Positions 21,685 through 64,000 of a DNA stretch of 64,000 nt are shown here, one piece after another; position 1 is the stretch's first letter; each line of letters begins with the position of its first letter. The DNA lies in the NCBI GenBank assembly GCA_000708835.1, contig DF237341.1, positions 1-64,000 on the forward strand, read 5' to 3'. Made by a program: the position numbers and the translations under genes. The notes below the pieces were generated by a model. That model was not told the DNA's origin. It did not search any database and was given only the letters and a program-made list of their open reading frames with translations. Source of the stretch: Klebsormidium nitens. Its lineage: Eukaryota > Plantae > Klebsormidiophyceae.

Positions 21685-22234
21685 NNNNNNNNNNNNNNNN
21701 NNNNNNNNNNNNNNNNNNNNNNNNNNNNNNNNNNNNNNNNNNNNNNNNNNNNNNNNNNNNNNNNNNNNNNNNNNNNNNNNNNNNNNNNNNNNNNNNNNNN
21801 NNNNNNNNNNNNNNNNNNNNNNNNNNNNNNNNNNNNNNNNNNNNNNNNNNNNNNNNNNNNNNNNNNNNNNNNNNNNNNNNNNNNNNNNNNNNNNNNNNNN
21901 NNNNNNNNNNNNNNNNNNNNNNNNNNNNNNNNNNNNNNNNNNNNNNNNNNNNNNNNNNNNNNNNNNNNNNNNNNNNNNNNNNNNNNNNNNNNNNNNNNNN
22001 NNNNNNNNNNNNNNNNNNNNNNNNNNNNNNNNNNNNNNNNNNNNNNNNNNNNNNNNNNNNNNNNNNNNNNNNNNNNNNNNNNNNNNNNNNNNNNNNNNNN
22101 NNNNNNNNNNNNNNNNNNNNNNNNNNNNNNNNNNNNNNNNNNNNNNNNNNNNNNNNNNNNNNNNNNNNNNNNNNNNNNNNNNNNNNNNNNNNNNNNNNNN
22201 NNNNNNNNNNNNNNNNNNNNNNNNNNNNNNNNNN
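21685..22234. other. Assembly gap (550 N)
   Basis: Run of N inside coding sequence. Confidence 1.
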
Positions 22235-48411: not shown

Positions 48412-50957
<2,546 letters not shown>

Positions 50958-53771
50958 GGGCGCGCTGCCACCGCAGAAAGGATGGCAGAATTGCGTTGGC
51001 ACCGCCTGTCTTAGCAACGTGCATGCGTCAGTCGCCCTGGCCGGGCAACTCAGGGGGACCAAACGCCCCAGGTAAATAGGTTAGCAACATGAACAGTGTT
51101 CCAGCAGCCAAACGGCTTACCTATTGCCCGGAGCCGAAAACTTGTGGGATTGAACCTCCACAGGGTCACCATCGAAACCCCGTGGTTTCGTGTCCGGGCA
51201 AAACGCCGTTTAGGAGATGTAGAGGGCTGGTTTAGGTGGGTTTCACAGCCAAAAACACATTAACCTTCTTCTAACAGTCTTCTTAACCCTCGCCTCAGAC
51301 CAACCGAGGACCGCATCGGCCTCGGGACATCAGAATAAGCAATCTTGACCGTCAAAGTCAGGGAATTTCTCATCTGACGGTGCGGAACATGGTTCGCGGA
51401 CTTTGAGTGGTGTTTGGTCCCCCTGGGGCGACTACAGTAGTCTATAGGTAATAGGGTTTGCGATTTGGGTCACACATACGTAGGGTTCCGTCACATTTGT
51501 ACCTGGTCGGTACCCCCCCTTTTCGCCGTTCCAAGTTTACATCTATATAAGCTCAGCTCGTTCGTAGCCATATTTTGCCGGGAGCCAAAAGATTGTTTCG
51601 AAAGCGAGTCTACTGCAAATTGAATATCGCAAAGGGTGGGTTCGACCGTAGACGTGAAACCATCAATATCTACGGCCCGGGCTCTCACCTATAGAGCTTC
51701 GCGTAGCTTCTAATATCGGGCCCGACATCGCATCGCCGCGGCCGGCGCGGGGGTACCACGTTAACCTACACTGTAAGTTAAAGACGGTACTTTTCAATCT
51801 GCTTCTTCATACTTAATACTAAACTTCTCAGCACACGTTGTCCATAGAATCGCGCCCTCTTTCTACATAAATATTCGTTTATCGTCGAAACCGCCGGTTT
51901 CGAAGCCGTGGGCCCTGGCAATTTTGAGTTTAGCGACAGAATCTGATGACGGGTCGTAGCTCACGTCATTTGCATCGAACTGAATGTACAGCCATTTTGA
52001 GAGGCCGTCGAAAACAACTCCTCGGGGAACCTCAGTAGAGCGACCGTCTTCCAAGGAAATACAAGCTTCAAGTCGCTGCGCTGTTATATCCGGGGCAGCA
52101 ACGCGAAAGTAGAATTGACTTTCTCGAAATTCGTTAGGTACCGTTGTAGACTGCCCTGGTAGCGTGGGTCACAGCATCGCCCGTCAGTCTGACTCTGAGT
52201 CTCAGCTGGCAGATGCTCTCGACTCGAGAACAAAGTTCGGTGATCGATCTGCAAGTGAAGCTTCCCACGCAGCTTCGGCTTCCAACTTCAGGTTCTCCCT
52301 GCAGTGGAGTTCTCCCGGCGTTTGGAGTGGCACCAGCATGGAGGATTTCAGCAGGGAGTCCAAGATGTGCACTAGATTCCTGAAGCAAGACAGACCTAAG
52401 CTTTTTGCATTTTCAGGAGATTAAGGTGCGGAGCATCGTGGAAGACGAGCAAGACGAATTCAGGAATTCTACGGCGCATGGTTAGTCGTTGAGGTAAGGG
52501 CCCACTGGTTTATTTCCGAGGTCACCTGTCACCTAAAGGAGCTGTTGTCAAGCTGGCAGCCTTGTTGAGCGACTTGTAGAAATTTTTGACTCCTCATCAT
52601 TGAGTCGTCCTCAGCAGTCAAGCATCGCTCCGCTGGCTGTGAGTACCAAGATAATGTTCTTGGAAAGCAATTGGATTATTGCACATGCCGAGGAAATGGT
52701 ACAATGTGCAAAGTTTGCACATGATCAGTGCCATAGAGCAAACCCCCCTGGCCAAACAGAGCGCTCAAAGCTAGAGGCATCTCAATCAAAGTGATAGTTG
52801 GTGTTTTATTGTACTTGTTCAGTTTCCTTTAATAGGTGGATGCACGTTACTCAATGGCAGTGTAAAATGGTCGCAAAGCTTGGGAGCTGTGAGCGCTGAA
52901 CACCCCTTGCTAACGTTGTCTCCTTCTTTGGATCCTGTTTGAAAGTCGCGCAACATATGGCATCGCCTCAGGTCACATGCATCAGCTCTCACAGCTGTCA
53001 GGACTGTCCAAGTTTTGTGGGCCCCCTTCATCTGCTTCAAGTTTGCGCCCATTGCTAGTAAAGGCATCAAACTTACAATGCTCACAACTTGAAGAGCTTG
53101 TTTGAGATCTGGCTTTGAGCCATCTGACCGCCTCCGGCAATTGGACAAACTTTCTGCTTTTTCTTCCTCGTCATTGTGAGTGCTAAAGTCTCAAACAAGG
53201 ACTCTGGCTTCTTCTTCGTTGTCCCTGTTTAGAGGGGAGCAACTCAGTTGAGACTATCTGAAGTTTCTTCAGGTTTGCCCCATGTCACTGACTTGACTCC
53301 TGGATGGGGTACCCAAACGTGTGTGAGATGTTGTGTGAGATGTTTCGCAGATACTTATGCCTTTCAAAGGTCCAGCACAGATTTTTTGCCCAAGATTATC
53401 ATACTTGTTCAGCTTTTGTGGTGGTGGGTGCATGAAGCTAACATTGTTCATTGTATCTCCTTAGGAGGTTTCGTTAAACGTGGTGCCTTCAGGGGCTACT
53501 TGGAGCCTGATGTGCAGTTGGCTTTTGATGCTGCTGCCAAGCAAACATTGAAACGTTAAGAGCAACGCTTTAAGGAGCTACTAGTGAGATCCAAGGACTC
53601 CCCCTACAAAACGCTCTTTGTCTCTCCTCCGTGCATCTCCTCTGTGCGGCTGGTTGGTGCTGATTGCCTTTACCTGTCTTCGCTGCAGATTCTCGGCAAC
53701 GTGAACCCCCAAGTTACTTACTGGGCACGGCTTCGATCTGTCTACTGACTACACCACTCACAGTCTTCACC

Positions 53772-54257
53772 ATGATTCGCCCGGTGGCGCCAGAGGACAC
53801 GCCCACTCTTGTAGCCACGGCTGCGGCCACTGGCTTGTTTTCTCATGATGAGGCGGAGGGTTTTTTTGGGGTGCTGTTGGACGACCTGCACGCAGGACGG
53901 CTAGGAGATGGTCATCTTGCTCATGCATGGGCTAATGAGATTACAGGCAAGATAGCCGGGTGGGTATACTTTTCACCGGAGAAACATGCGGAGACAGTTT
54001 GGCAGTTGTGGTTCATTGGAGTGGACCCCAGCTGGCAAGGACGGGGAGTTGGCAGTGAGCTGCTCCAAGATGTTGAGTCCCACGTCGTAAGGGCAGGGGG
54101 TCGGCTCCTTTTGATTGAAACAAGCTCGTTGCTTGACAGGACTCAATCGTTCTACACTAAGCGGGGCTATACAAGGTGTGGACAAATACCGGACTTCTAT
54201 GCAGATGGGGATGATAAAGTAATATTTGTGAAGCGGGTGAAAACCGAGTCGTCGTGA
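53772..54257 (+). CDS. GNAT-family N-acetyltransferase, 161 aa, intronless core, bacterial-like
   Basis: MIRP..PED, motif A IGVDPSWQGRGVGSELL, LLIETSS, FYTKRGY, IPDFYADGDDKVIF. A splice acceptor at 53687-53688 may add a 5' exon. Confidence 0.9.
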   Translation: MIRPVAPEDTPTLVATAAATGLFSHDEAEGFFGVLLDDLHAGRLGDGHLAHAWANEITGKIAGWVYFSPEKHAETVWQLWFIGVDPSWQGRGVGSELLQDVESHVVRAGGRLLLIETSSLLDRTQSFYTKRGYTRCGQIPDFYADGDDKVIFVKRVKTESS

Positions 54258-55063
54258 GCATAATGGCCCAACAAACCGAGCTTGGTTCGTACTAATTGCC
54301 TGCAGTTTCAAATTCAATGGAGCCATCTATGTCCTACCAAATAAAACAGATTTTCCTTCAATGGATTCCTAGCCAACTTTTTGCGATTTTTGCGTTGTAG
54401 GAAAACACGAGAACTCTTGTCAGTTTGGGTCGATCGTGATCCTGCATCTAGATGCTCGGGATCGGTGGTCACGTTCTTCAAGTTGTGGTGATCAGCTTGA
54501 CAGACTCCGATTTTGATCATGCAATCGTGGGATCGTATATATGCCTTCGGTCATGAGGCAATGATGATGATGATGAGGCGCATCCTAAGACGTTGACCAT
54601 CAAAGCATGACCATTGGGCCGATCGCGAATGGGCTTGAATCCTTGGGCCTGCATGGCATCATGTGGGTTAGTACCATGCCCATGTCACTTTAACCAGGCT
54701 ACTACAGTAGCATGCTCGGAAGTTGCGTTTGGTAAGTAGATCTTGCACAGTGTCGTTCAAGCATGAGCACGAGAGCATTGCCGGGACTCCAGTACTAGCT
54801 CGGAATCATCCAGATATCCATTGCCGCCGGGGTCCATACGTCTACTAGTAAGCCTTTGGGAATAAAAGATTGGTGCCAGATATTGTTCTCGAAACTTGGC
54901 CCCAGGTCGCGCGATCGTAGAAGGGCGTCATCATCGAAAGACTCTCAGATAATGAATTGAACGCCAGGGATCAATGCTAGGAGCTAGGTTTGGACTAACG
55001 TAGCCCCTTCGAGATTGGTAGGGTAGTTAGGCGTTCGAACCTCAAACATCAAGTCCCATGTAT

Positions 55064-55676: not shown

Positions 55677-58600
55677 ATGGGGCCAGCTACCAGGTCGAAG
55701 CGCGCCAATGAGCCAAATAAGGAGCAGCCGGACTCCCTTGGCATGCTCATGCGAGGTAGGTGTGCTCCAGGTAAAGTGAGCTGGCAGGGGCCAACGCCCA
55801 CCAAAAGATACGCTACTTGCTTCACAGTGGGCAGGTGCCGTGCTCGGGCATGGTAGGGCTCAGGGCTGAGTATGTGCGTTGCTTGGGACTGCAGCTGCAG
55901 TCTCGGCGTGCATGCTTGATGATCCTTGGCTTTGGCTCTTACTTTCTGGGACGCTGGTTCAGTGTTAACGTGGCTGTTTACATGCAACGGTCTGCAGTCA
56001 TTGGCATCATTGTTGCACTGGGTTGTGTTCTGCGTTCTCTGTTGACCCCCAGCTGATTTTGTCCAGAGTTGATCTGGTTCAAGCTGTCCTTCAAGGCTTT
56101 GACTTTACCACCTGTGGCTATCTTTCTTCAGTTAGTGAGGTCAAGTGTCAGCTCATCAAAGTGTGCTTCAATAGCACAATCCAGCCGTGTGAACTCATGC
56201 ATGCACAGAACGTCTTGAGCCCGATAGCTGCAGCCCCTCCTCAGAAAGGATCGCAGCCATATCCAACAATACAGTGGCGCTGCGCACTTCACTTCAAAAA
56301 TTTCTACAGGGCTTCTGGTCAAATCTGCTCTGATGCCAGATGAACAATGTGGACTCCTTGTCCAAGGAGTTCAGCCACTCTCTGTGGGAGAGCGCGGGGC
56401 TTTGCTCTCTGACCCCTCGCGGTATCAGGCAGCACATTTACCATGCCTATGTTTGGCGCTGATGGTTCACGCACCAGGGCGAATTGTCATTGGGCTGCCC
56501 CCTCATCAGAGCTGGGGTTCTGGATGCAGATGAGAAGCGGCGGGCAGGTGCGCGCACGCACGGGGACATCTGGCAGGAGCACCGGAAGCCCTCTTCGAAA
56601 GCGGACACGACAAGCAAGAAACGAAAGAAGAGTGCTGAGAAGAAGGCAGCAGAGGAGACGGGCGAGGATGACGCCTTCAAAGTTCTGCAAGCAGGTGATG
56701 CCCCCTTCAGCAATGACGCGCAGGCTGGGCACCGCTTTTGAGCTCTTGGCAGCAATCCATTGATTCCAACTTGTGCCCAGGAACCTTGGTGCGCTGGTAA
56801 GTGGGGAAGTGAGTTGTCTGCTTCTGAATCAATCGAGTTTGTGTGGCGAAACATTGGACGACCTTGAACATTGTGCAGAGCAGAAAACGAAGACGACAAA
56901 GAGGAAAAGCGGAGAGCCTTTCGAGGAAAAGAAAGAACCAGCAAAGAAGGCGCCAAAGCGAAAAAGCGAAGAGCCTTCGAAGGAGAAAGAAGAGCCACGA
57001 AAGCGGGCGCGGAAGGATACAGAGACGAAGGACGAACCGCAGGAGAGAGACACCAAGTCTGCCGAAGGTAAAGACTGCGTCCTCGATTGCTGACGAATTC
57101 GACTAACACAGTCAGTGAACACTATCAATGTTCGAGTGCTGACCCACGAGGAGCATCAGTGACCACATGCTGAAATTTTCCTCTTAACGAGCCGTCAATC
57201 TAGTTATCTAGTGTATTTTCATTGGTCAAACAAGTGAGTTTTTTCGTAACATCTTCTATGCACTGACTTTCTTGAGTCACAGTTTCACCCCTTTTTCCAC
57301 TCCCTATGGCAGAGCCCGGTGCAAAGGCGGCTCCCGACAGCGGGGACGCCAGTGGGCAGCAGGGCGGCGGTGGGGCGGTGAGCGGGGTGGTCACCATCAA
57401 CCGGGCCCCGACCCTGACGCTCTGGGTTGCGACGGTGGCGGAGAGGCAGGGGTACAAGGCCGAGGAGGCCCTTACGTTCGGCAAGTACGTCTCGGGGGTG
57501 TTTGCGCAATCAAAAGGTGAGGCAGAGCTTCGCCTGCCACACATCGCGACCAAAGGCCCATGCGCGGAGTTTTCGTGAAAATGCTGATTGTGACACTGTC
57601 GAGCTTTCATCAGCTTGTCTTGGAGACGCACGTTGGGCAAGAACCGTTGACCCATGACGGCTGGTAGAGCAATTCTGGGCTCCTCTCTGAGCAACCTCCA
57701 CGCGAAATCTATCTGGCCCCTCGACCTTCACTACGTGACGCCTTCTTTGACCACTCTGCCGCTATCTAGTAAGTCGTTCCCTGGCAAAGAGCGACTCTCG
57801 TCCTAATCCATTGATCCTGTCTTTAAACATTCTCGGGTCACGGATTCGCGGCCAGACCCATTGTCTTCATATGACCCAAACTTCCTGCTTTCTTCTGCAC
57901 AACTGTTCGGCTATCGGCTGACGCCAGGCCGCGCTCCCGTGTGTGCAGGCAAGTCGATCGGCGTGATCGAGGCCGACCCCGAGAAGGAGGCGCAGGTCAA
58001 GGAGGCGAAGCGGGAGCAGCGGCGCGGGCTGGACAAAGTGCCGGTGTTCGGGATGAATATCACCGTCAAGAAGACGCCCGAGGGCCAGGTGCGCGCGCTG
58101 GAGGCGGGCGGGAAGCCCATCGAGCCGCGCACGGTCAAGGCGTACCTGCACCGCGCGTTCAAGGACAGGCTGGACGACGCGCAGAGTGAGCGGCAGCAGC
58201 GCGAAACTGATTTCCTTCGTCGAGGTCCGTGACCATCTTGGCGAGCGGCTGGTATTTGTGACGTTTCTCTTTGATTCCCGCGTGCCCAAGGCTCTTTTGG
58301 CCGTTTGGATTGGCTCTCAGGTTCGCGGCCCGCTTTTGGATGCGCTGGCGAGATTGAGAGCAGGTTTGATTTCCAGGAGTGTATGCGTGGCTGCTCGACC
58401 ATTTGGTGAAGAACGTCCTTGCTTGGGCCATCCTGTCCTTGCTTGGGCCATCCAGGATTCGCGCGAATCAGTCTGTTGTGAGGGCAGCTGGTCTTACAGA
58501 TAAGCCCTGTTCTGCTGACGTCAGCCGATGATTGTTTTGCCGCAGAAGCCATGGAGGCTCTGGCCGCGGCGTACCCCGCAGAGGAGGTTGGGAAGAAGGC

Positions 58601-59847: not shown

Positions 59848-62800
59848 TCATTGTCTTACTTTTGCACAGACTAGGCCTAGTTTTGCTCTATATTGACAGG
59901 CGAGTAGTACCTTTTCTTGCTCCGGTGTCCACGGAAGCGCCCCTGTTGACGCATGCTGCAATCCCTTGAACTTCAGTTCCAGGAGCCTGCACACGAGCAT
60001 TCTCTTGATGTCAGCACGAAAGCGGACCTGGAATCAGCGCCACGGTGACAGAAAAGTTCGGAAGAGGCATGTTCGAGCTCAACACCACTTACAAGGAACA
60101 TCGAAGAGCAGCTCAGAAGCGAGCAGGATTCCAAGACGTTAATCACAACGGTATCCGTTCGTATGCATCAAGGCCTGTTTTGGATGAAACAAATTCGAAC
60201 GTTCGTGGTTACAGGTTCAATCATAAAAAGTTGCTTTCCGCAGGCCTGCTCCGCCCCGGCTTACTTGCGCACGGCAGGCGTATCCCCATGCCCTGTGGCC
60301 ACGATGAGCAGCGCGTTTGGCGGGAGGCCCTGGTACACGGCATGCACGCGCGCATCCAGCCGCTGCAGCACGGCCTCCAGCGCCGCTGACACCGGGGGGA
60401 CCGCCACGTCCGCCCCGCTCGGGCTGCACGTCAGCAGGGCCGAGATGGCGGCGATAGAGGCCGCCACCGCGGTGGGTGTCCGAGCCATCTCTGCACAGAG
60501 GCAAGCAGGCGAGGGGGTGAGGACACTCATCAAGCAGGCTCCAATGGTTGTCGCCCCAACCAGAACAAGGTGCGCGGACAAAGACAGCCGGCGGCTGGGG
60601 CCGTAGAGCTTGCATAACAACGTACATGCATCTGCTTACGGGTTGCAACACCAGGCAGTGCTGCGGCTTGTCTGGCTGCGGGGCGTTACCTTCGTGGTGG
60701 GTGGTCAGCTCTGCGAGGCGCGCCCAGAGGAAGCGCGTGGCGGGGGTGTGCGCCTCCTTGCGGACCTTGGCCACCACCTCGTCGTCCGACTCCGCAATCA
60801 CCGCACCGGACGTCCCCACCGCAAACCGGCGCAGCAGCCTGCAGCACAAATTTGAAACGGTTGGTAAGAGGCGAAGGGAGTCGGCCATGTTGCGAATCAA
60901 AGTATGCGATAACAATGGGCAGCAGGCTTTGAGCATCGGTGCCCAGCAAGCAATCCCGCCGTTTGCGAGAGAGAGCCGTGATGGGAAACAAGCAACGCCG
61001 CGTACCTCCTGCGGTCAACCAGCGTGCAGCGCTTGCCCTTCCTGCCCAGCAGCTCGATCAAGCTCTCTCCTATGATCGCCCGGGCCTCCCCGAAAGAAGG
61101 GCCTGCACAGGAGGGTGGGTATCCAATAACGCTCAGCGATTTGAAGCTCACAGGGAGGTGAAAGCCGACTCGGCAAAAGGTCACCTCCAGTGACAGCAGG
61201 ACTCAAGCTTGACCGCGCCCAAAGCATTTTCTGACCCGAACAAAACAAACTCCGCGAACCCCTTAAGGACTGTAAGCGGAAGGATCGATGTCGCAGGCAG
61301 CAACGAGAGCAGCAGTGGGGATGCGCTTACCGTTCTGTATTTTGAGCTGCGCCAGCTCCATGGTCGCCCGCGCGTCCTCCACGCTGTCGTGGCCCTTGTC
61401 GCCCCCCTGGATTGTGCGGTGCAAGTGGCGCTCTGCCAACACACGCAGCGCGGGCTGCAAAAATGAAGAGACAGGTGACGGAAACCGCGAGGAAGCATCA
61501 AAGGAGCTCAACGCAAATCCGGGTAGTGTCGCTGCAAGTGGCGAACCGAGTCATGGTGCGGTTCGAAGAAGTAGACGAAGTTCGGCGGATGCTCCTATTA
61601 AGTGGGGCGGTTGTTCGCATTAGTTTGATCGAGGGCACCGTTTTCGTGACACTCCCGTGGAGCTTGTTCGTTCTTTACAGCATGAAAAGAACTTCTCGAC
61701 TGCTTGCTTGGCGGCTCTTTGCAACGAAAGAGGCGGCTGCTAGCACGGCCAAACTCTGAGCAATGAAGAAACGATCGACGAACAACCCCAAGAGGCCGGT
61801 GTCCGTCGATCTCATGTGAGAAGTATGACAACGATGCTGTAACCTTGACTGCAATTGAAAAGAGGGACACACGTGTATCGCGTAGCCATCTGGGTGGTCC
61901 TCTATCGGATCGCTGACGTGCCACAGCATTTACCGTCCTTGTCTCTGGCAAGCAGCGGCAGTGAAACCGGATCCCGCAGCGCAGACTGAGATGGCAAAAT
62001 GTTGAGAATCACCTTGTAGGGGGGTCCACGGGGATGTGGAAACGCCAGCGCGGTGTCAATGTTGTTGCCGTGTATCAACTGCGGTGCAGCAGCGCAGGGT
62101 CAGCCTTCCGCAAAAAGCAGCAGAGGGGGATGCACCAAAGCACAAGGCAGGCCGGAGCGTGCGCTCCAGGGGGCGCCTTGGTGTAGGTCAGAAACCCCCG
62201 ATGCAATGCACGAAGGTATATATTGGGATGGGCGACAGCGAGGGGGACACGGGGCAAGCCGCTGAGCTAAGAGCGGATGCGCACCTTGAGGGCCTGCAGG
62301 TCGCTCTGCAGGGAGTGGCCCACCAGAATGGTCTCCGCGCTCACCAGCTCCAGCAGCTCTGCCTGCCAACACAACACGTCAGCACCGGCCAGGCGTGCAC
62401 CAACACAGCTGCGATGACACACAGCTGACATGGAGAAGCAAGTCGCTTGCAAACCTTGATGACAAGGACACTCGGAAGAGATTGGACGGAGTAACAGCCG
62501 GGCGGCATCACCTGGATGTCCTGCAAGGTGGTGGTCACGTCTTGAAGCATCTCGGCCGTAATACCGCTGAACCTGCAGTGAAGACGAAGTCAAGCCGGTC
62601 AAAAGAGCACCAAAGCAGGATCCTCATCGTTACACCGGCTTCGACTCCTCCAGCTGTTACGAGCAAGCTTCCGACCTGTCTGCACAGCCGTTGCAAGGTC
62701 GTGTAGGAGAAGCAGCTCGTTCACCAGCAGCAGAGGCCCGCAAACACAAAGGAAGGCTGTCCACAAGCCACCTAGGGCCGTGACCTTTTGCTAGGCTTGA

Positions 62801-64000
62801 CTTCTGCAGCCTGACCAGGAAGCCGGACCACAATGATTGGTCGGACGCAGAATAGCAGGACCCGTTCGAAAGACAACGGCGTTGGTGGATGCTCACTTGG
62901 TGTTGTAGTCGCGGATGGGGTTTGTGGGCTTGACCAGCTTGTCCAGCAGCACCTTGCCCTTGCCCGACACCAGCGTCACGCGCGTCAGCTCCAGCCCCGC
63001 CTCCGTGTAGCACTGCACAGCACACACGCAGCCAGGCGGCTCAGCCAATGCGATACACGTCTGACAAAGCACGGCTGTGTCGGAGAGGAGAACCCACACA
63101 TGCAAGTGGTGGTAAGCTTGCAGCAATCAGCTTGTGACCAGGTGGACTTCGAGCTATCCCTACTTTCTCAAACCCTTTCACTAAAAGACGGCACCCGGTT
63201 CTCACCATTTCGCAGTCCACTGCCACCATGGGCTGCCGCTTCTTTGTACCTGCCAAGTCTACTGCAGGCCGCGTCTGTACAAAACCTGCACAGTCAAGGT
63301 GGTCGTCAAGTTAAAGGTGAAAAACGCAGATTGTCCTCCTGCTTGCGCCTCAGTTATAGACGAGAGTCAGGCACCCGCCTCCTCAACTGCTGATCTTGAG
63401 TAGTCCACTATCATGAACCAAAATCGTCGAAACATGTTCCAGTCAAGATTCCAATCGGCTCGTCCCCAGATCCGGACAGAAGTGCAAGCCCTACCTGGCG
63501 GACAAGTCGGTGGATCCCCTGGTATGACTGTTGGATACTCGTTGTCCCGCATCTCTGTTTCTGTCAGCACGTAATAGGAGGGGGGGAACGGAGGAGGACC
63601 GCTGTTCCTCCTCCTCGAAAAAACGGGGGCCCCACGAGCTGCACCAGCCTTCGCCCCCGCTCCTTGCCCTGCTTTCACATCAGCTGCCTCAGACGTGCTT
63701 GCTTTCTCAGAAGAACCCTCCACGCCATTCCGTTCGTCTGCTGCCGGCGTCCCTACGCCTTCCCCTGGAGCTGGCCCCACTTCTCCGCTCTCTTGTTGGT
63801 CTGCGCCAGCTAGTGACGACCCTTCTGGTGGCTCTGCTGTGGTTCCTCTCTTCCCACTGCCCTGCTCCAACATGTCAGTAATCTCGCCCTCCTCTGTTGC
63901 TCCACTCACTACACTTTTGCCCTCCACTTTCTGTCTCTTCTTCTGAGGTTCTGCGACCTGGAGTGCCGGTTCAGCTGTAACTGCCCCTTTCCCGTTCACC
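59848..64000 (-). CDS. DEDDh 3'-5' RNA exonuclease (SDN5/REXO1-like), 5' end beyond window
   Basis: ExoI VAVDCEM, YSGIT, Exo[23 protein letters not shown], Exo[11 protein letters not shown]; C-terminal [12 protein letters not shown]. The last exon ends TGA at 59848-59850. Confidence 0.92.

Follow-up and report, generated by a model that had tools for sequence, protein, structure and literature searches.

How green plants came to live on land is studied in Klebsormidium as a model, and genes from soil bacteria are thought to have contributed to this transition. Transfers from bacteria to streptophytes have been published for a MAG glycosylase (PMC5570899) and a Tm-1-like gene (PMC5028733), in each of which a bacterial enzyme gene became fixed in a streptophyte lineage. 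Here we describe a GNAT-family N-acetyltransferase gene in a 64,000-nt stretch of Klebsormidium nitens DNA (assembly GCA_000708835.1, contig DF237341.1, positions 1 to 64,000; hereafter the window), which was probably acquired horizontally from bacteria and retained as a nuclear single-exon gene for a 161-residue protein. This would be an event of the same kind, but unlike in the published cases, the GNAT is apparently restricted to Klebsormidium plus one relative and absent from land plants.

Among described structures, the closest is that of DDE_3044 from Desulfovibrio (PDB 2r7h), a structural-genomics GNAT that is uncharacterised and carries the deposited name 'putative D-alanine N-acetyltransferase'; it has the same length and single-domain architecture as the algal protein. 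However, the two are only 29% identical, and the tree places the Desulfovibrionaceae with other distant members in a subfamily apart, whose genes belong to an operon with a KamA-type aminomutase and Ddl-like ATP-grasp ligases, whereas the algal gene and its close bacterial relatives are not in such an operon. The stand-alone GNATs of Gemmataceae, Isosphaeraceae and Polyangiales (for example P0022 of Frigoriglobus tundricola) are 58–64% identical to the algal protein along its whole length and agree with it in start and invariant residues, but they differ in their high GC content at third codon positions (GC3, 0.81–0.99), in their variable and unrelated gene neighbours and in the lack of a 2-residue deletion common to the two eukaryote-like copies. 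The polyamine N-acetyltransferases SSAT, SpeG, PaiA and BltD have superfamily and fold in common with the algal GNAT, but no specific sequence relationship was found, as none of them was among its 52 PDB sequence matches (E up to 1) or its 16 NCBIfam matches (E up to 0.1). The detoxifying GNATs (tabtoxin resistance protein 1ghe, puromycin N-acetyltransferase 7k09, and the phosphinothricin and AAC(6') enzymes) are stand-alone single-domain proteins like the algal one, and 1ghe and 7k09 were the second and fourth PDB sequence matches (E 3.7e-06 and 2.9e-04). These matches, however, covered the acetyl-CoA half only (residues about 60–150) and fell far under every curated cutoff, and membership in the tabtoxin, puromycin, phosphinothricin or AAC(6') families was rejected on these grounds.

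The encoded protein and its relatives

The GNAT coding sequence (CDS) lies on the + strand at 53772–54257 (ATG at 53772, TGA at 54255–54257), and its open reading frame (ORF) of 486 nt, that is 161 codons plus the stop, is without interruption. An earlier reading of the DNA, made from the letters alone (hereafter the sequence-only reading), had cited peptide strings of a bacterial-type stand-alone GNAT with an intronless CDS amid intron-rich eukaryotic genes; all of these strings are present in the ORF translation, and the assignment was borne out. The product matched PF00583 (Acetyltransf_1) with E 4.6e-15 and 56.4 bits against a gathering cutoff of 20.7, and it also exceeded the cutoffs of PF13508 (Acetyltransf_7; 45.3 vs 27) and PF13673 (Acetyltransf_10; 29.1 vs 23.6). 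All 13 of the 13 family-invariant residues are retained, including the acetyl-CoA loop of motif A (Q89-G-R-G92-V-G94), which fits Q/R-x-x-G-x-G/A and in which G92 and G94 are invariant across a 41-sequence alignment.

With this alignment as input, AlphaFold2 gave a model with a mean predicted local distance difference test score (pLDDT) of 95.6 and a predicted template-modelling score (pTM) of 0.89. When the model was submitted to Foldseek, at least 500 GNAT matches were obtained in the PDB, with 2r7h at the top (TM 0.87, root-mean-square deviation 1.9, 29% identity), below which generic GNATs (RimI, PaiA, phosphinothricin, ArsN, Ard1) formed a flat list. The best PDB match by sequence was also 2r7h (E 5.6e-15). 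As modelled, the ORF product is a complete GNAT acetyltransferase with the mixed alpha/beta GNAT fold. The NCBIfam search returned sub-threshold generic matches only, among them weak AAC(6') models and the RimI model TIGR01575, whose 33.6 bits lie below its equivalog cutoff of 86.4; an assignment as RimI or an N-alpha-acetyltransferase was rejected on that score.

A word search with the GNAT protein gave 411 protein matches, of which the best, P0001 (70–72% identity), is encoded on a 2.9-kb Logan contig of run SRR23617307. The matches that followed were 58–64% identical, and the named ones came from Polyangiaceae, Frigoriglobus (Gemmataceae), Isosphaera and Minicystis; one match belonged to the chytrid Podochytrium. 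The top matches in a genome scan were from Gemmataceae, Isosphaera, Polyangiales and Myxococcales, the nearest ESM Atlas clusters were 94–100% Bacteria, and a second chytrid, Chytriomyces sp. MP71, came from an all-length representative search (3192 matches at E up to 0.001). The word search, the genome scan and the ESM Atlas yielded no other plant or algal relatives, and a metagenome scan for further algal orthologues gave nothing above 64% identity. The sequence-only reading had noted a resemblance to GNATs of cyanobacteria and other bacteria, of which the cyanobacterial part was not supported: relatives were found in the Planctomycetota (Gemmataceae, Isosphaeraceae) and the Myxococcota (Polyangiales), and no cyanobacterium appeared among the named word-search matches or the 80 titled genome loci, while a further 80 metagenome loci carry no organism names. 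Besides the window, the eukaryotic occurrences in the protein and metagenome searches, in which eukaryotic genomes were not searched directly, were one eukaryote-like contig (that of P0001) and the two chytrid fungi.

Both chytrid copies, at L085:449-931 (Podochytrium sp. JEL0797, JADGJG010001090.1) and P0126 (Chytriomyces sp. MP71, KAI8620564.1), are single-exon, and the Podochytrium gene, with a GC3 of 0.60, lies on the same contig as an XRN exonuclease gene. Several longer metagenomic relatives of 315–375 residues (P0121, P0125, P0127, P0128, P0136 and others) had two stretches that match the query, suggestive of tandem double-GNAT fusions of this family.

Phylogenetic position and retention of the gene

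In a careful maximum-likelihood tree (LG+C20+F+G4, 60 rows), the window GNAT and P0001 were sisters (100/100), and the pair was nested in five successive supported bacterial clades (95/88, 96/87, 98/87, 99/82 and 100/98). The same bacterial nesting was recovered in a quick 140-row tree and in a 59-row careful tree, so that the check proposed with the sequence-only reading, whether the gene is nested in bacteria by maximum likelihood, had the same positive outcome in all three trees. The direction of transfer depends on rooting with the well-separated distant subfamily as outgroup (140-row tree). The two chytrid sequences formed a clade of their own (100/99, 59-row tree), and these copies possibly represent an independent transfer. 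When the alga and the chytrids (four eukaryotic rows) were forced into a single clade, this arrangement was not rejected by the approximately unbiased (AU) test (p 0.28), and one acquisition is therefore indistinguishable from two.

The GNAT ORF has a GC content of 0.54 and a GC3 of 0.54, and P0001 has a GC3 of 0.50, compared with 0.81–0.99 in the close bacterial homologues and 0.74–0.78 in the exons of the neighbouring agmatine deiminase. Among the 41 aligned sequences, only the window GNAT and P0001 have the 2-residue deletion, which follows the ETSSL motif. Over the 161 codons the two differ by 0.19 nonsynonymous (dN) and 1.6 synonymous (dS) substitutions per site, with a dN/dS of 0.118, which indicates strong purifying selection. 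The flanks have a GC content of about 0.49–0.50, the single N run in the window is at 21685–22234, with no gap within 30 kb of the GNAT, and in the assembly the sequence is continuous with intron-rich neighbour genes. Taken together, the host-like GC3, the shared deletion, the gap-free flanks and the dN/dS point to an old transfer kept by selection, and not to contamination. The idea of a horizontally acquired and domesticated gene was thus upheld by the bacterial nesting, the host-like composition and a dN/dS of 0.12.

Under this reading, the donor would most likely have been a soil or freshwater bacterium of high GC content, akin to the Polyangiales (Myxococcota) or the Gemmatales/Isosphaerales (Planctomycetota), and the transfer would be older than the split from the organism that carries the P0001 orthologue, the sole known one. 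After the transfer, the gene would have drifted to a host-like base composition under strong purifying selection. The protein is predicted to adopt the canonical GNAT fold, to bind acetyl-CoA via the Q-x-x-G-x-G loop and to acetylate an amine, and the acceptor amine would most probably be on a small molecule (a metabolite, or a xenobiotic or antibiotic-like compound) rather than on a specific protein. A cytosolic location and an intron in the 5' untranslated region (5' UTR) that ends at 53688 are likewise predicted.

Several points weigh against this reading. The immediate 22-row clade, which includes the Polyangiales sequences, was supported at 83/69 only, and the donor phylum may be either Myxococcota or Planctomycetota. 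The contig of P0001 looks eukaryotic by its low coding density (one called gene in 2.9 kb) and its composition (50% GC), and it is from these two features that its eukaryotic nature is deduced; in addition, its 3' end carries a TnpB/Fanzor-type domain. When the 161- and 197-residue products were looked up in public protein sets, no exact match was obtained, and no protein near 100% identity was found in the word search or the all-length representative search. Because the public protein sets searched hold no identical or nearly identical protein, the gene may be unannotated, and its gene model is putative. The GC3 below that of the neighbouring host gene may reflect weak expression, and the members of the close clade have neither a characterised substrate nor a conserved gene neighbour.

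The TnpB/Fanzor-type domain was located at L001:2673-2882 (+) of the SRR23617307 contig, about 100 nt past the stop of the GNAT orthologue, where a frame open to the contig end encodes a TNB zinc ribbon of the TnpB/Cas12f type (PF07282, E 1.3e-08). To judge from this match, it is a TnpB- or Fanzor-like element adjoining the transferred orthologue. No such counterpart was seen downstream of the window GNAT in a comparison with the orthologous contig.

Three other explanations of how the gene came to be there were weighed against the same evidence. Bacterial contamination or a chimeric assembly in the algal scaffold would account for the intronless ORF and for the closest named relatives all being bacterial, but it is extremely improbable, given that the GC and GC3 are algal-like and outside the GC3 range of the close bacterial relatives, that the flanks, at about 0.49–0.50 GC, show no bacterial-like ORFs and no nearby gap, and that the top bacterial identity is just 64%. 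As for co-transferred bacterial DNA, a tblastx comparison of 51.0–57.3 kb with all bacterial loci matched the GNAT alone, plus one 19-residue low-complexity match. Vertical inheritance or an origin from the plastid endosymbiont, followed by loss in nearly all other eukaryotes, could draw on the presence of the family in the two chytrids and on the single eukaryotic clade that the AU test did not reject. It is nevertheless highly improbable in view of the 58–64% identity to Planctomycetota and Myxococcota, of a position several supported nodes deep in bacteria with the distant subfamily as root, and of the searches made, which gave no cyanobacterial, other plant or other algal relatives. We also regard it as very unlikely that the GNAT is an unexpressed or decaying relic of a transfer, with an ORF intact by chance; its GC3 lies well under that of the neighbouring host gene and it is apparently unannotated, as a relic might be, but every invariant residue is retained, and an intact ORF with a dN/dS of 0.118 is not expected at a dS of 1.6 without selection.

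Literature searches on Klebsormidium horizontal gene transfer combined with GNAT or acetyltransferase, on 2R7H and on SRR23617307 found no description of this GNAT gene. It would be a further case of a known type of event, the transfer from a bacterium to a streptophyte alga. If the acquisition is as we propose, it would provide a clean and datable case: the bacterial enzyme gene is intact, its relatives are clearly donor-like, its composition resembles that of the host and it is under strong purifying selection. The same family in chytrid fungi hints at a recurrent benefit. Alone, the case adds only modestly to the many such transfers on record, and it would gain more weight only if the substrate proves ecologically meaningful, as in the detoxification of a bacterial metabolite.

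Gene boundaries and the agmatine deiminase neighbour

Ahead of the gene, the sequence-only reading had pointed out a branch-like CTGAT, a pyrimidine tract and a TGCAG. These elements are indeed present at 53660–53688 on the + strand (CTGAT at 53660–53664, the pyrimidine-rich tract, and TGCAG at 53684–53688) and form an acceptor-like motif 84 nt before the ATG. We defined acceptor-like sites as YAG with at least 13 pyrimidines out of 18 and a CTRAY 8–45 nt upstream. There are 14 sites of that quality on the + strand of the window (0.22 per kb), and at this density one such site within 84 nt of the GNAT ATG is unlikely by chance (about 0.02). The motif at 53688 thus goes beyond what chance readily gives, yet it is still a motif only, and 53660–53688 is plausibly the candidate 3' end of a 5'-UTR intron. 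Combining the donor list with the acceptor scan, we infer a candidate intron of 105 nt (53584–53688, +), with GTGAG as its donor at 53584 and CAG as its acceptor at 53688. In the exon upstream of it, the GNAT frame runs into stops (TAA at 53571–53573), so the lead-in to the GNAT would be untranslated if the candidate intron is spliced. The exon-like piece itself (53465–53583, +) follows a second strong acceptor-like site at 53464; its longest frame closes with a TAA at 53557–53559, it has no Pfam match, and it would serve the GNAT gene as a 5'-UTR exon or else be the final exon of another gene upstream. On the other side of the CDS, an AATAAA hexamer at 54340–54345 (+), 83 nt past the stop, is a possible poly(A) signal.

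The reading frame of the GNAT is unbroken from 53664 to the ATG at 53772, and the 83 nt from 53689 to 53771 correspond to a lead-in of about 27 codons. The GNAT might accordingly be the last exon of a larger gene, with an upstream exon joined at 53689 and the lead-in serving as an N-terminal extension (a targeting peptide or another domain). This arrangement would agree with the strong acceptor-like site and the frame open to the ATG, with the open lead-in of 64 codons in the orthologue, and with the lack, in public sets, of a protein that fits the 161-residue model. By itself, an open lead-in of 36 codons is nothing unusual (about 0.18). We consider such a larger gene unlikely, however, because the similarity between the window GNAT and P0001 starts 21 nt before the ATG in both DNA and protein and the lead-ins further upstream are unrelated, the candidate acceptors of the two orthologues differ in phase, the nearest candidate upstream exon brings in-frame stops, and the all-length representative search gave no longer protein at about 100% identity. 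Furthermore, the bacterial homologues begin at the same methionine as the algal GNAT in the 41-sequence alignment. Since the similarity begins just before the ATG and the bacterial homologues share the start methionine, the coding part of the gene is most likely just the 161 codons.

A neighbouring gene on the − strand (48412–51062) is a multi-exon agmatine deiminase, which is split over at least three pieces and was recognised by Pfam on single ORF pieces: PAD_porph matched three pieces, scanned singly, with E 1.8e-27, 3.2e-38 and 5.8e-08 at profile positions 1–91, 141–241 and 289–321. The divergent agmatine deiminase named in the sequence-only reading is thus real and lies head to head with the GNAT. 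That reading had gone on to a possible two-gene agmatine/polyamine module, in which the genes would be co-regulated and the GNAT would acetylate agmatine, N-carbamoylputrescine, putrescine or another polyamine. The genes are divergent with no Pfam-detectable gene between them, the polyamine acetyltransferase PaiA (1tiq) is among the structural matches (Foldseek rank 10, TM 0.80, 16–17% identity), and one subclade of Sphingomonadaceae has a flavin amine oxidase at a distance of 628 nt from its GNAT. On the opposite side, the probable start codon of the deiminase is near 50957, 2.8 kb from the GNAT ATG with unexplained sequence in between, and an agmatine deiminase within 6–10 kb of the GNAT was absent from all 163 bacterial or metagenomic loci examined (1.5 Mb). 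Nor did the 2 kb upstream on the orthologous contig show any agmatine deiminase similarity. The sequence matches include no SpeG, SSAT or BltD model or chain, and the structural match to PaiA is level with those to RimI and to the phosphinothricin and tabtoxin enzymes. The start distance, the 163 loci and the lack of a polyamine-specific match in sequence or structure leave the module unsupported, and we hold it to be decidedly unlikely. The Sphingomonadaceae subclade, which is on a long branch (L032, L035-L037, L039-L041), has its GNAT about 630 nt from the flavin-containing amine oxidase (PF01593) in 7 of the 7 loci.

Functional leads and surrounding sequence

In the close bacterial clade no conserved gene neighbour of the GNAT was found, a pattern typical of stand-alone small-molecule or detoxifying GNATs. 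In the distant subfamily (30–40% identity), which includes the Desulfovibrionaceae, kin of 2r7h, the GNAT is the last gene of a conserved same-strand operon, as seen at L062:2559-6453, in L055, L068, L065 and L067, and in about 20–29 other bacterial loci. The operon consists of a KamA-type 2,3-aminomutase (nearest to AblA, below cutoff), one or two Ddl-like ATP-grasp ligases and then the GNAT; some loci carry instead a fused ATP-grasp/GNAT/HDAC protein (L067). It is spread over Spirochaetota, Planctomycetota, Chloroflexota, Gemmatimonadota, Desulfovibrionaceae and Riflebacteria, and a literature search found no paper on such an aminomutase/ATP-grasp/deacetylase cluster. The gene content points to acetylation of a small molecule derived from a beta-amino acid in this distant branch, and the operon apparently represents an uncharacterised beta-amino-acid pathway. 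For the algal enzyme, it would be a remote functional lead.

As a tentative and rather doubtful extension of the transfer reading, the GNAT clade may have been captured separately by a terrestrial streptophyte alga and by chytrids, and retained under strong selection to inactivate an amine-bearing compound of soil and freshwater biofilms. Candidate targets would be an antibiotic from myxobacteria or planctomycetes, or D- or beta-amino acids in free form; the GNATs of the distant subfamily work next to a KamA-type aminomutase for beta-amino acids and Ddl-like ligases. If this were true, the GNAT would be a transferred chemical-defence enzyme and not a polyamine enzyme.

The remainder of the region around the gene was also inspected. 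The 2.4-kb interval at 51100–53460, from the start of the deiminase to the exon-like piece at 53465, has 49% GC and several open frames of 60–120 codons on both strands; six ORF pieces from 51.8–53.6 kb gave no Pfam match, and the interval could be intergenic or hold an unrecognised small gene. Downstream of the GNAT, the region at 56440–58230 (+) holds a gene for a lysine- and glutamate-rich, probably nuclear protein, two pieces of which had no Pfam match. Further on, the region at 60200–63400 (−) contains exon pieces that, judged by eye, resemble an RNA exonuclease of the REX1/REXO type.

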